From positions 682,001 to 746,000 of the forward strand of contig CM074821.1 of the NCBI GenBank assembly GCA_037447605.1: 64,000 bases of DNA. Direction: 5' to 3'. The notes under the pieces are model-generated. The model made no database searches. It worked only from the letters and a program-made list of their open reading frames with translations, and was not told the DNA's origin. This stretch comes from Zygnema circumcarinatum SAG 698-1b (Eukaryota > Plantae > Zygnematophyceae). Position 1 is the first letter of the stretch, and every line of letters begins with the position of its first letter. Below, piece by piece: positions 19,179 to 24,762 of the stretch. Made by a program: the position numbers and the translations under genes.

Positions 19179-20688
19179 GCGCAGCACTCGGGAGGTAGCC
19201 GGAGGGAGCTTCGAGATTGAAGTTTGCTTCCTTAGCAAGCACTTCTTGAGGTGGTTACTAGCTTCAGTAGATAGTTGTTTTGTTTTGAGTTAAATCGTTT
19301 TTGTAAAATAAAGTTCGGACGCAGGGAATACAATTGAAATGACCGACCCAAAATTTTGTTGTTGCTTGCGATGAATGTTTTGCTTTAAAAGCGTTGTCCA
19401 ACACTTGGTTATTTAAGTAAATTTCTATTCTTCTGATGCGACGAGCAGCTCCTATCGTCATCTTTGGCCGCTTTCTCCGTACTTTTTGTGAATTATGTCA
19501 AAGCTGCGAGCTGTTATCATTGTTGACTTGGTGTTGGATGATGAGACTTGGAAGGAAGACGAGGAAGAACTGTCTGAACATTGCTGAAATGTCTGCTGAA
19601 ATGTCGATCTTTTGATTTCCGACTTCACAATTACAACACTTCTCAACACTACTTGCCTGCTAGCGTTTTTATCTGTACCTCGAAACAGAACCACCTTCAT
19701 CACCTTCTTTCTTCTCTTCATTCTTCTTCTTCTTCACCTTCATCTTACTCTTCAAGGGGCAGAACCAGGTTGACCTCAATTCTGGATTCCTTTCCCCTTG
19801 TGCTTCGCAAAATGGGTCCTTTCTCAACCATGTCGTGTCTAGGATCAGCAGATGACAGCTCTGAAAGTGGCACAAACTATAAGAGAAAACCATTCATGTA
19901 CATGGGGACGAGAATGAACGAATATCACTAAAAAGCACTCTACCGGACATACTCGTTGACATTCCTCCCTACATGCCTTTTTATGACTTTTTTCAAAACC
20001 AGATTTGAGACCAACCTCCCCCATCATGAGCATGCAAATCCCTTACTGGGAAAGCTAATTCCACACCGCTCCAACACCTCCTTTCAGATCCTGATCCTGG
20101 TGGTAGCGGCAGAGCGGGTAATACTGGGCCGTATTCCAGTAGCCAATTTACGGCTTGTCCTGGCAAAGGCTACACTACGCTTGAGGTCGCTGCGCATTGA
20201 CATGCTGCTGATTACAGCAATGAAAAAACATGCAAAACAGTGCAATGGCTAGCCAATGATCCGACATGTGAAGTGTTTGCATGTAAATTGTATGTGGATT
20301 CGTCCAACTCCCATTTCATAACCTTTGATTAGAACATCTCATTGTCTCGTAGCCGGGGCGAGAATAGAAGAAGATGAACCAACCGGGAGATCGACCACTC
20401 ACAGATGTTGCAAAAAATGAGCACTTCGAGTTTTACAATGGCAAATCCTCCACTATCGTCACCAACTCCTCTCTAAGCTTACCATCATAAACCAATGGCA
20501 ATGAAAAGTATCTCAAAAGTTTATTCTACAGCGACTCAACAAATAGATTTAAAAGTTACTCTGGCTTAACTTCCTCATCGATCATGTGATGCTCCCGTTC
20601 AACACCTGCTTCTCCGTTACTGAACTGCAACCGGAACAGCAAGAGCCACATGGAACCTGAACACACTGGTTCAATGCTCTTCTAAACC

Positions 20689-23265
20689 TTACTTTACAGA
20701 AATAGTCGCGCTCTGCAGACCTGCCGCTTCAATTGTCTGCGAATCATCTGACAAGGGTTTGGGCGGGAAAGATGTGAGCAGCTGGAAATTGGGGGGAAGA
20801 ATTGGCTTCGATTTCCGGATAAACACCCGAATATCAGCAACTGTTTGGCTAAGGTTGAACTTTTCGATCAGCCGCGAACCATCTCCAAGTCGAATTTGTA
20901 TGGAAGTGGAGGGCTTAGACTCGTCAAATGGAGTCGATGGTGGGGCCGAATTCGCGGGTGGGGTCGAACTTGATGGTGGGGCCGAATTCAATGGTTGGAC
21001 CGAATTCAATGGTTGGGCCGAACTCGATGATGGCAACAAAGGAAATGGTTGAGGACGAGGATATAGCTGAGGGAACGGCGGGCGAGGGTATGGCTGAAGG
21101 TATGCATGGGGGAAGGGCCGAGCATATTGGGGAGCGTAAGCTTGAAGATATGCAGGAGGAAATGGCTGAGGGTATGCTTGAGGGTGCGGCTGAGGAAGCG
21201 GCTGAGGATGAGGATTAGACGTCGATGATTCACCTGCAGAATCGCAGAATAACTTAAGAAGGGTTCAGAAGGGGCATGTATACAGCCATGAACATGTATC
21301 TTATCTTCACAGTAACAATAACCTATCCCCTCCAGATCCTACTTGTAGATATCCCAGGTTTCCTCCATTATGCAATGAATAGAGTTACATTCCATGAACG
21401 AGTTTGGCAACAGGTCAACAAGTCACTAACACATATTGGACATCCATTTGATGTGTATTCAACACATCCACTTCCACTCCCACCTTCCATCCAAGAGAAC
21501 GAGCAGCTATTTGCAGATTGCATCTCCTTATGTGAACCTGCACTGGGAGCGGAGCATGTGGGTGAACCTCTTTGCAACTTAGGGAGAAAGTTCGCATACC
21601 CAGACGCCGTCCCTGCCCACTGAAGCTGGCGGTAATAGGAGGGTTGGTGTAGTGTTTCTGCACCATGGCCTTCAGCTCCGGCTCGTTAACACCCACCAGC
21701 TCCTCCACTTTTCGTCCTTCACTGTACACCTGGAAAGTGGGCAGCCCTCTCACACCGCACTCCATGGCCACATCCTGTACAAAACAAAGAAGTCATGAAG
21801 TGTTCGTCAACATAAAACAAACGACTTCAGGCAGGGAAAGAGTACAGGGTGCGCCATAGGAAAGTGAGAGAAGATAGAGGCAACACAAGCGATGGTTCTG
21901 TAGCTTCAAAACGACGAATAGTGCGACCCGGGAAGAGGGAAGGGGATGGGAAGTTAGGTTATCATGCGTTAAGAAGCAGTGGCAGTGGCTGCTAAACCAT
22001 ATGTGAAAGAGGTTAATACTCAGTTTGAACAATCCAAGATCTAGAAATTAGCTTTTAAGAGTGTGGTTTTGAGCATGGCTGCTACAACTAGTGCTATCAA
22101 TCCCTTTTCAATATTTGCAAATCCTAATACTGATAATCCTAAAGATAATCAAATTTTACACTGTAAACACCAACAGAGGCTTCGCAGAAGAAAGCTATGA
22201 CTTGAACTTAATGCCCAGCTGTAAAAACTCCATCAAATAATTAATTTATGAAAATTGAGGATGAACATTGACCCGTCGTGGAGGGCAATGGTAACGACGC
22301 TTCCATCTCTTTACAAAGCATAGTTCTTATTTCTCCTGGTGGTAAACTAGTTGTATTCAGCTGCAATCTCTTGAAAAAGAACAAGCAAGAGTATGTGACG
22401 GCACTCCTTGTACCGAAAATGCGCTATACACTTGCCCCACATCAGTCAAAGTGGGTTTTTTTAAATACTTAGGTTGTCTGAGGGGCAACAACAACAGCGG
22501 GATTGGAGGGTGCACGAAATCGAGAAGGGTTTGAATTCAAACCACCCACCGAAACCTCGTCGACATCAATTTTCAAAAAAATGGCATTTGGAAAAGCGGC
22601 GCTGAGAGCTTGGTATGCTGGTGCGATCGTCTTGCACGGCCCACACCAAGCGGCCGAAAAATCGACTACAAGCTGCACATGCATCCCCAAAAAACCCAAG
22701 AAAGAACGATGTGCTTACAACACACGCTAAAACGTTCCGAAAATTGGCCAGTAGAGCAGAGAGAAGAAAATGCCAACCGTATGATCAAGAAATATGACCT
22801 ATGTGGGATAAGTATGCGTATTCGCCCAGGTATGGCAGACAGATGGATGGACATTGGAAAGGAGAAACATGCCTTGAGAAAACTCCAAACGACAGTTAAC
22901 TAACCAAAGGAATCTGCTTCACCTAGACCAGTGCTTGCAGCTGACCCTGCAAATCACTTGATTCCGCTTCCTTAATTTCCGCGACGACAACCCATTTAAT
23001 TCAAACATTGCAATGCATTTTGTCCTGCATAATTGAAGATTTAGGACAGCAGTTGACATTTCTGTACGCATAATTCTATGCTTATGAAAATAGAATGCAT
23101 GGATGCACGTCACACTGACCACGTGCATACGATACCTCGCATGAATGCTGGGAAGTACCCTGAGGGGGGTTGAGAGCTCACAATCTTCTTGCTGGCGACC
23201 GCCTGACTGTGGTGCCTGTCCCAATCCCCACGCGACTGCACCTCGACGATGCTCCCGCCGGCCAT
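20689..23265 (-). CDS. Thioredoxin (WCGPC) - SHP box - Pro/Gln-rich linker - UBX fusion protein (~308 aa); exons 23265-23182, 22672-22550 (or 22556), 21774-21600, 21233-20689
   Basis: Trx: [41 protein letters not shown]. Exon 3 runs without a stop into FSGQGRRLG (SHP). A phase-1 GT-AG intron joins exon 4, which ends in [50 protein letters not shown] (p47-type UBX). Confidence 0.88.
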
Positions 23266-23277
23266 GGCGTGCATAGG

Positions 23278-23300
23278 AAACCCTAATTTTGGAAACCCTA
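23278..23300. promoter_or_regulatory. Two telo-boxes (AAACCCTA) in a 15-bp tandem duplication just upstream of the Trx-UBX ATG
   Basis: GGAAACCCTAATTTT occurs twice; AAACCCTA at 23278 and 23293. Confidence 0.5.
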
Positions 23301-23666
23301 ATTTTGAAGGAGGCAGCAGGAGAGGAAAGGGTGCCACGGAGCGATGACCTGCCAAGCGGGTGCCTCTATTGCGTCCTTAGGGCCTGGTATTATCCAATCG
23401 CTGTTCGCCACGTGTTCATTCTCTACACGTGACGAACACGCATTGGTCCCTGTCGCCTGTTCGGACTAAATCGGACCAGGTTCCAATAGGGGGTCTCAGA
23501 CTTAAAAAACGATTACCAATTACCAAGCTGTACGATTACCAAGTTTTCGAGTCAACTTCACCAGTCTCGCGCCCCCCGAACGTAACCGTGATCGTGACAC
23601 GACGTGACTTTATCACCACTCCGCATTTGCCGGTATGACCAATTTCCAAAGGCGCGNNNNNNNNNN

Positions 23667-24762
23667 CAAGCTTCCATCCTGCCCCCTCTTCAGCTGCATT
23701 CCCAGCAGATACTGCGCCTCTCCCAGATCTGACATTTTGAAATTTGCCTGAAGCAACTCTTTCAAAGATCTGATTCTTTCAAGGGAGAGGCTCACCATGA
23801 TCAGATCGTCCACATAGATTCCTACGAACATGATGTCTGCCCCCTCTCCTTGAAGGTACATCGAATGATCTATTTCGAATCTCACAAAATCATTCCTCCT
23901 CAAAAGATCATCGATCTTTTCGTACTACACTCTCGGCACCTGCTTCAAGCCGTACAGGCTCTTCACTAGTCAACAGACTAGGTGCTCCTTCTCGGGGACG
24001 ACCTTCCCCTCCGGCTGCTCCATGTAAATCTCTTCTATGAGATCACCATACAGAAATGTCGTCTTGATGTCCAATTGATGGACGTGCATTCCTTCAGCCG
24101 CTGCAATGGAAATCAAGGCTCTCAAGGAATTGAACTTTACCACCGGAGCGAATGTCTCCATGTAGTCAATCCCATATTGCTGGCCGTATCCTTTCGCCAC
24201 TAATCGCGCCTTGTACCTATCCACGCTTCCGTCTGCCTTCCTCTTGACTTTGAAGACCCACTTGCAGCCGATAGCTCGCCTCCCTTGAGGCAGCTCCTCC
24301 AATCTCCACGTGTCGTTCTCGATCAGGCTGTCCCATTCGCTAGCAATCGCAACCCGCCACTTATCGCCATCGACTCCGTCGTGCGCCTCCTCGAAGGTCT
24401 GTGGCTCGGTAATCATGAAACAGTGGGCAACTCCCACAAGGTCAGCTGAATCTGATGGCACCCTCTCTTGGATCAGATTGTTACCAGGCGAGAACCGATC
24501 TGGTCGCCTCGTATCTCGGCCGCTCCTCCGGATTGTCTTCGCGCTTCGGCCTCTCGGGTAGAAGTAGAGTCCGGGAACAAATCCTGGGGGCATGTTTGCT
24601 AACATTGCCTCCCTCTCGGCCACCTCAAGATCCTCTGAATCTTGCGCGTGAAGCGGGACCGTCTCCACTGAGTTCTCCTCTTCACCTCCGCTGAACTTTG
24701 CGGCTCCTCCGCATGCGCCTCCATAGGCGTCTCTCCAACATCAGCCGGCTCGCTCATCGCTG
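23667..24762 (-). pseudogene. Ty1/copia reverse transcriptase fragment with in-frame stops
   Basis: EPQTFEEA, SLIENDTW, AIGCKWVFKVK, RYKARLVAKGY, ETFAPV, HQLDIKTTFLYG, KSLYGLKQ, IYVDDL, MSDLGE. In-frame TGA at 23970-72 and a TAG soon after. Confidence 0.93.

Follow-up and report, generated by a model that had tools for sequence, protein, structure and literature searches.

Does the minus-strand gene at 23265..20689 of the genome stretch that we analysed from Zygnema circumcarinatum SAG 698-1b (64,000 nucleotides of contig CM074821.1, positions 682,001 to 746,000, here called the window) join a thioredoxin (Trx) domain to the docking elements of a CDC48/p97 cofactor, and what could such a protein do? 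CDC48/p97 must unfold clients that are possibly disulfide-stapled or cross-linked after oxidative stress, and it is itself switched off by cysteine oxidation. A natural Trx tethered to both canonical docking motifs for the CDC48 N-domain would make both matters testable with one protein of about 220-310 amino acids. We found that the gene is real and expressed, and that one spliced mRNA encodes the Trx domain, an SHP box and a UBX domain. The new aspect is a putative UBX-type CDC48 cofactor with a catalytic-type thioredoxin head; the sequence family itself is already recorded.

Gene model and transcripts

Read directly from the window, the gene consists of four exons that are compatible in phase and are separated by GT..AG introns (Table 1), and its coding sequence of 927 nucleotides is open throughout and yields a protein of 308 amino acids. 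RNA evidence was taken from Logan contigs that derive from four public runs on this organism, placed on positions 20500-23400; these contigs are assemblies, and one that spans two genes proves no single transcript. The splice joints 21231>21598, 21773>22549 and 22672>23182, and exactly these three, were present in all four runs, with ends that read CT..AC on the plus strand and hence GT..AG on the strand of the gene. RNA depth was about 200-600 over the exons and even along all of them, compared to about 6-20 over the introns. One contig of 1,282 nucleotides (X1 record 1) runs from the 3' untranslated region (UTR) through exon 4 with the UBX domain and exon 3 with the C-terminal half of the Trx and the SHP box into exon 2, and a second RNA contig joins exon 2 to exon 1. 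The RNA contigs reach upstream to 23315-23329 in the 5' UTR, and the 3' UTR extends beyond 20500, X1 record 1 going 344 nucleotides past that position.

The end of exon 2 required a choice between two donors. With GAG/GTTTCG (22556) the shorter exon 2 left the Trx profile two positions short, and this donor was ruled out by the RNA joint 21773>22549. A downstream donor had been suspected because of the two missing profile positions and because the closest relative of the window protein, P0001, has two extra residues there. The donor in use is TCG/GTGGGT, 6 nucleotides further downstream (exon 2 end 22550), which adds Val-Ser, supplies the Trx profile positions 61-62 missing at the junction of exons 2 and 3, and yields exactly 308 amino acids.

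Retention of intron 3 was seen at a depth of 0-13.8 against 216-496 for the spliced form, or at most about 3% of the latter, and is probably just pre-mRNA. If the intron were retained, the frame would read on to a stop at 21415-21417 (open reading frame 21415..21771), giving a Trx-SHP product with an unrelated tail of about 60 amino acids and without the UBX domain. At position 21476, inside this intron, a single A>G difference was observed in one run (X2), likely an allele or strain difference.

The original prediction for this locus had proposed four phase-compatible exons and one open reading frame of about 308 amino acids, and both the direct reading and the RNA joints bear this out. The junction 21600/21233 was seen in RNA contigs of all four runs. 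Neither transcripts ending in intron 3 nor separate mRNAs for Trx and UBX, which the prediction had named as findings that would speak against it, were seen, and the spliced full-length form dominates. The window protein was absent from the protein collection searched and has apparently not yet been recorded among predicted proteins. A corrected gene model with RNA support is a practical gain for the Z. circumcarinatum genome.

Domains of the encoded protein

Based on Pfam searches with the single exons, exon 2 matched the Thioredoxin profile PF00085 over positions 22-60 (E 1.2e-12, 48.2 bits against a cut-off of 23.5), and exon 3 continued the same profile over positions 63-102 (E 1e-4). Family members with this domain score 80-103 bits against PF00085. 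In an alignment of 17 members the buried Asp, the WCGPC and a Gly are invariant or nearly so, and the cis-Pro (P80) is invariant. The fold of the window protein begins at about residue 5, with no N-terminal extension fit for a targeting peptide. An AlphaFold2 model was made from the 17-member alignment for P0001, which is 65% identical to the window protein, and not for the window protein itself. In this model the predicted local distance difference test (pLDDT) is about 97 for the Trx and about 95 for the UBX domain and below 50 for the linking segment, with a predicted template modelling score (pTM) of 0.52. The modelled Trx superposes on the h-type Trx of barley, Chlamydomonas and Arabidopsis with template modelling (TM) scores of 0.94-0.97 and a root-mean-square deviation below 1 Å. 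As judged from the alignment and the model, the domain is apparently an active, canonical, cytosolic Trx of the h type that retains all catalytic hallmarks checked. We also considered a UAS-type domain, which was ruled out by the WCGPC and the PF00085 match; Thioredoxin_7 matched far more weakly (E 0.0065 vs 1.2e-12).

Exon 4 matched the UBX profile PF00789 over positions 3-80 of 82 (E 4e-17, 62.6 bits, cut-off 21). Its best match in the PDB was p47 in 1s3s, the complex of p97 ND1 with the p47 UBX (E 5.8e-20), followed by other p47 entries, the Arabidopsis PUX5-CDC48A N-domain fusion 9v9o and p37/UBXN2B; for p47, PUX5 and p37 alike, the structures are of complexes with p97/CDC48. The IQIRL and FPPK of the window protein align with IQIRL and FPNK of p47 in 1s3s, and R156, a Gly and P198 of the UBX are conserved in the family alignment. 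The UBX Arg and the F-P-x loop are, as we take it from the 1S3S structure, the residues that contact the p97 N-domain.

The SHP box, FSGQGRRL, lies about seven residues past the Trx fold, on the exon that encodes the C-terminal part of the Trx. Across the 17 members its F, first G and L are invariant and its second G is at least 90% conserved, and it falls in a low-pLDDT segment of the P0001 model, as expected of a linear motif. It conforms to the consensus FxGxGxxL, which occupies the second N-domain site, as in p47 and Ufd1 (PMC5042407); the window protein lacks the additional Phe that precedes this motif in the 11-residue version of Ufd1. Comparison of P0001 with a p47-like SEP-UBX protein gave one contiguous alignment from the SHP box through the linker to the UBX domain, with 45% identity over 111 amino acids (E 6e-27). 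None of the window exons had a Pfam match to UBA, SEP (PF08059) or PITH (PF06201), and UBA and SEP were also unmatched in every short-form family member searched. On these alignments we regard the SHP-linker-UBX part as homologous to the C-terminal module of p47, and as p47-type.

Between the two docking elements lies a linker of 105 amino acids, 32 of which are Pro. Much of it is filled by two in-frame tandem repeats, one of 18 nucleotides × 5.6 at 20934-21033, giving hexapeptides of the NSxPPx type, and one of 12 nucleotides × 3.7 at 21164-21207, giving xPQP repeats. P0001 is without these repeats and has about 25 residues instead, and from this comparison the long Pro-rich linker looks like a recent, lineage-specific expansion.

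The domain composition of the original prediction also held. Its canonical Trx with an intact WCGPC agrees with the Pfam results, the family alignment and the PDB and structure comparison of the relative, its SHP box and p47-type UBX with an FPP loop agree with PF00789, the PDB matches and the contiguous P0001 alignment, and its Pro/Gln/Tyr-repeat linker was found as described above.

Table 1. Features of the Trx-SHP-UBX gene, in window coordinates.
Feature	Positions	Strand	Residues	Remarks
Exon 1	23265..23182	-	1-28	ATG at 23265; N-terminal strand and helix of the Trx fold
Exon 2	22672..22550	-	29-69	Trx core with VVDF and WCGPC
Exon 3	21774..21600	-		C-terminal half of Trx (residues 70-112, 21646..21774), then SHP box
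Intron 3	21234..21599	-		366 nucleotides; splits the linker
Exon 4	21233..20689	-		Remainder of linker and UBX; ends with TAA 20691..20689
Trx fold		-	~5-112	Exons 1-3
VVDF		-	30-33	Buried Asp; exon 2
WCGPC	22648..22634	-	37-41	Active site; exon 2
LPTF	21744..21733	-	80-83	cis-Pro loop; exon 3
SHP box FSGQGRRL	21624..21601	-	120-127	Exon 3
Linker	20920..21600	-	128-232	Pro/Ser/Gln/Tyr-rich; interrupted by intron 3
UBX domain	20695..20919	-	233-307	Exon 4
IQIRL	20901..20887	-		Arg of UBX strand 1
FPPK	20769..20758	-	283-286	UBX loop

A family of Trx-UBX proteins and its place among known cofactors

Relatives were sought with exon pieces and with residues 81-302 of P0001 (P0001:81-302). The exhaustive HMMER search, which rests on the latter query, covered 1.84 billion representatives of clusters at 50% identity, and the best 150 were assessed. 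Trx and UBX were both present in 46 of these, 42 of which kept the WCGPC and 34 an FxGxGxxL box. A word-indexed search with the UBX piece returned 4 proteins only and strongly understated the family, which the exhaustive and profile searches corrected. In the ESM Atlas we found several Trx+UBX clusters of proteins of about 220 amino acids, with 50-153 members each and Chlorophyta and Rotifera as the commonest known phyla, some of them auto-named 'Thioredoxin/UBX domain-containing protein'. A red-algal Trx+UBX+UBA cluster was also present, and PITH-bearing Trx proteins fall in separate clusters.

The members come from green algae (Trebouxia, Coccomyxa, Apatococcus), Zygnematophyceae (Spirogloea with three copies, Netrium), red algae (Rhodosorus, Bangiopsis, Purpureofilum, Cyanidiococcus), other protists (the glaucophyte Cyanophora, Chromera, the amoebae Balamuthia and Vermamoeba), early-diverging fungi (many Mortierellomycota with two paralogues, Basidiobolus, Entomophthora, Neoconidiobolus, Hyaloraphidium, chytrids) and animals (bdelloid rotifers, sciarid flies, a copepod, a weevil, a flatworm). 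Their labels are all generic ('thioredoxin-like protein', 'hypothetical protein' and the like). Insertion of a UBA, a UBA-SEP (that is, a whole p47 behind the Trx) or a UBA-ZZ between Trx and UBX gives longer variants, and as far as the domain matches tell, thioredoxin is joined to UBX cofactors in several architectures. Among single proteins, P0027 of the flatworm Cichlidogyrus and P0042 of the chytrid Phlyctochytrium are a full p47 (UBA-SEP-UBX) with an N-terminal WCGPC thioredoxin, P0110 is Trx-UBA-ZZ-UBX, and P0029 combines two Trx domains with two matches to UBX.

The window protein aligns end to end with 18 family members. In a maximum-likelihood tree it is sister to P0001 (support 100/99), within a streptophyte clade with Spirogloea and Netrium (94/96). 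The fungi form a well-supported clade of their own, the arthropods are grouped more weakly (91/70), and the chlorophyte rows adjoin the streptophytes in a part of the tree that is not resolved. The groups broadly track organismal groups, which fits an old, largely vertical inheritance with many losses. Judged from these sequences, the family is old and spread across eukaryotes, and the window protein is one more member of it, distinguished by its unusually long repeat linker.

No protein labelled as angiosperm, vertebrate or ascomycete had both domains among the best 120 profile matches, and no Swiss-Prot entry, including those of Arabidopsis and rice, matched both; the Arabidopsis PUX review likewise describes no Trx+UBX protein (PMC8181520). 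A full-text literature search of about 8.4 million papers and preprints found no characterisation of the layout, and no solved structure of it was found in the PDB. The family is known as database sequences, partly auto-named, and its function is uncharacterised in the literature searched, probably because human, yeast and Arabidopsis appear to be without members. The original prediction had named no characterised protein with this layout, and the literature search, the PDB and Swiss-Prot gave none. It had also raised the possibility of a known, widespread family, and this proved right as to being widespread and recorded in databases but not as to being functionally known. Its proposal that the UBA-SEP end of a p47-like gene was replaced by a reductase, with the local and unusual domain swap that this implies, was not supported, as the layout is that of an old, eukaryote-wide family. 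The patchy but broad distribution over algae, early-diverging fungi, rotifers, some arthropods and amoebae raises the question of loss, and free Trx or NRX acting in trans are candidate replacements in lineages without the family.

The distances between the parts differ in their conservation. From the active-site Trp to the SHP Phe there are 79-88 residues in 30 of 33 family proteins (83 in the window protein), so that the SHP box lies only a few residues past the last Trx helix, and the distance from SHP to UBX varies from 13 to 316 residues. The FxGxGxxL is kept within a disordered linker that is otherwise unalignable. Taken together, the spacing and the invariant or nearly invariant columns (the catalytic set of the Trx, F/G/G/L in the SHP box, and Arg, Gly and Pro in the UBX) indicate that the conserved unit is a Trx rigidly followed by SHP, plus a leashed UBX. 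We counted the joint presence of Trx and UBX, the retention of WCGPC, the near-fixed spacing and the broad agreement of the tree with organismal groups as pointing to selection for the combination.

Compared with known cofactors, the closest likeness is to p47/NSFL1C/Shp1/PUX3-5 (UBA-SEP-SHP-UBX), which share the homologous C-terminal SHP, linker and UBX, and a bipartite binding of the N-domain is expected from this. The window protein, however, is without UBA and SEP and has a catalytic-type thioredoxin directly before the SHP box, and is not an orthologue. TXNL1 (Trx + PITH) likewise fuses an active thioredoxin to a module that docks on an AAA+ unfolding machine, but its PITH binds Rpn11/Rpn2/Rpn10, whereas the window protein is predicted to dock through SHP and UBX on the CDC48 N-domain. 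The two have no sequence relation beyond the Trx, and TXNL1 lies near the pore entrance, whereas the window Trx is predicted at the N-domain periphery. In animals, SELENOS (selenoprotein S/VIMP) is a redox-active, VIM-containing recruiter of p97, a membrane selenoprotein without a Trx fold. Diatom Trx + PUB proteins of about 794 amino acids form an ESM Atlas cluster whose most frequent known phylum is Bacillariophyta; they differ in that PUB binds the C-terminal tail of p97 and not the N-domain, and they suggest a repeated, maybe independent, recruitment of Trx to CDC48. The Cavalier-Smith paper gave no confirmation of a periplastid Trx-PUB cofactor, 'sPUB'.

A thioredoxin fold and a UBX also occur in one cofactor in the UAS-UBX proteins (FAF1, FAF2/UBXD8, UBXN7; PUX7, 10, 11, 14-16) and in UBXN4. 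The UAS domain is without CxxC and reportedly senses fatty acids and mediates polymerisation (PMC8181520), in contrast to the true PF00085 thioredoxin with WCGPC found here, a distinction that the original prediction had also drawn. Caenorhabditis PNG-1, a PNGase with an N-terminal thioredoxin that also turned up as a structural match of the P0001 model, fuses an active Trx to a component of the p97 and endoplasmic-reticulum-associated degradation pathway, and its Trx is required in vivo (PMC8997433). There, however, the Trx replaces the p97-binding PUB domain and its partner is a glycanase, whereas the window Trx is joined to p97-binding modules in what would be a pure adaptor. NRX1 is a Trx-superfamily reductase linked to CDC48 that reduces oxidised CDC48A (PMC13616930), but it has no CDC48-docking module and acts in trans.

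Predicted function and its alternatives

We consider it likely that the protein is an active Trx docked on CDC48, as a cytosolic or nuclear cofactor of this AAA+ unfoldase. Solved structures place UBX, as well as UBD, VIM and VBM, in the cleft that separates the Nn lobe of the p97 N-domain from its Nc lobe, and SHP on the far outer face of Nc; the two sites are separate, so joint binding is possible (PMC5042407). By analogy with the p47 and Ufd1 structures, the FP loop of the UBX would insert into the Nn/Nc cleft and the SHP box would bind the outer face of the Nc lobe. This bipartite docking would hold the Trx a few residues from the N-domain surface, and the long disordered linker would let both anchors reach the same or neighbouring N-domains. 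NADPH-thioredoxin reductase would recycle the tethered Trx, as for other h-type Trx. The Trx would then reduce disulfides in clients due for unfolding by CDC48, namely proteins cross-linked by oxidation or stapled by disulfides, and may also act as a client receptor through a transient mixed disulfide.

Such client-directed reduction, by analogy a CDC48 counterpart of TXNL1 at the 26S proteasome, is a tentative reading to which we give somewhat less than an even chance; if true, it would extend the recently established TXNL1-proteasome principle to a second major unfoldase. TXNL1 provides a precedent, being placed at the proteasome entrance, on Rpn11, and proposed to reduce substrates during unfolding (PMC12700817), and worm PNG-1, where an active Trx stands in for the PUB domain that binds p97, provides one within the pathway (PMC8997433). 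The sister architectures with UBA or UBA-SEP favour clients as well, since these domains are sensible for substrate adaptors and needless for self-repair of CDC48. Several points weigh on the other side. Both CDC48 binding and reductase activity of the window protein are sequence- and model-based predictions. As the SHP site is on the far outer Nc face (PMC5042407), a Trx about seven residues away would be at the hexamer periphery and not over the D1 pore, a place that, by comparison with TXNL1, would suit co-translocational reduction at the pore less well. The short form is without a ubiquitin-binding element, CDC48 itself is a documented target of the plant Trx superfamily (PMC13616930), and the family seems dispensable in many lineages, with no Arabidopsis or rice Swiss-Prot match and no vertebrate or ascomycete match among those listed.

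The same docking could instead direct the Trx at CDC48. Cysteines of the N-domain or D1 that oxidative stress has sulfenylated or joined in disulfides would then be reduced by it, and ATPase activity or cofactor binding would return; the protein would be a dedicated, tethered equivalent of NRX1, which acts in trans. In Arabidopsis, H2O2 oxidises CDC48A, nine cysteines being labelled, including Cys73, Cys81 and Cys109 of the N-domain, and oxidation of Cys271 inhibits the ATPase and is reduced by NRX1 (PMC13616930). Yeast Cdc48 has a redox switch in Cys115 of the N-domain, modelled near the UBX site, and the C115S mutant loses association with Shp1 (10.1101/733709). A short, near-fixed tether from Trx to SHP would pin the Trx to the N-domain surface, a position that fits CDC48 at least as well as clients, and the short form has no substrate- or ubiquitin-binding domain. 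However, the relatives that carry an inserted UBA or UBA-SEP have the look of substrate adaptors, Cys271 is in D1 and not beside the SHP site, and lineages without the family still handle CDC48 oxidation through free Trx or NRX. On balance we give CDC48 as the target a somewhat lower chance than clients, but as a rival to the coupling of disulfide reduction to p97 extraction, which the original prediction had suggested as a possibility, it is just as serious. An improbable alternative is that the Trx serves as a sensor, or as a non-catalytic, chaperone-like binder, and that its redox state alters the occupancy of the N-domain, for example by excluding Ufd1-Npl4 or p47 from the shared SHP and cleft sites and so retuning the choice of cofactor under oxidative stress. 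Cofactors do share and compete for SHP and UBX sites (PMC5042407; PMC8181520), and TXNL1 is reported to have, besides its activity, a chaperone function that does not depend on redox state (PMC10570131), but the WCGPC in 42 of the 46 representatives and the near-universal buried Asp and cis-Pro argue for catalysis rather than mere binding, and the P0001 model, with a pTM of 0.52 and a linker pLDDT below 50, predicts no contact of the Trx with either the SHP box or the UBX domain.

Some UBX-like folds bind other partners, and CDC48 binding is here a prediction; the UBX could in principle be a generic ubiquitin-like fold for a different partner and the FxGxGxxL match incidental. We regard this as very unlikely, given that the UBX belongs specifically to the p47 type and retains the conserved Arg and FP loop, that the SHP motif is conserved across supergroups inside a disordered segment, and that SHP plus UBX is exactly the bipartite module of p47. 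Hardly any weight is left for an artefact in which neighbouring genes for a Trx h and a UBX protein were joined by read-through or mis-assembly. Logan contigs are assemblies, as noted above, but the Trx-UBX joint is as deep as the other two joints in the four runs, the SHP box shares an exon with the C-terminal half of the Trx, the frame is open with similar exon depths, and the same fusion is found in more than 40 divergent clusters, including genome-predicted fungal, algal and insect proteins. A read-through chimera was rejected on the joint depth, the shared exon and this recurrence.

Returning to the docked, active Trx, we tentatively propose, with a little less confidence than doubt, that Trx-SHP-UBX proteins form a class of CDC48/p97 cofactors that is ancient in eukaryotes, provides the unfoldase with a disulfide reductase of its own and has been overlooked as human, yeast and Arabidopsis are apparently without it. 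The near-fixed tether from Trx to SHP would give the reductase a defined working position at the N-domain, with clients, the redox-switch cysteines of CDC48, or both as its targets.

Some minor observations concern the upstream ends of the gene and of its relative. The open reading frame of P0001 (Logan transcripts L001/L002) starts 80 residues before the conserved MAGG start; the extra residues look like 5' UTR, and the true protein is probably 222-223 amino acids long. Just upstream of the gene in the window there is a short run of N at about 23640-23665, with X residues in the open reading frame 23558..23677, the window containing 170 N in total. In the transcribed 5' UTR, at 23278-23303 on the minus strand, two copies of AATTAGGGTTT are found 15 nucleotides apart and 13-38 nucleotides before the start codon; they are 'telo-box' motifs resembling the plant telomere repeat (AAACCCTAA on the opposite strand).

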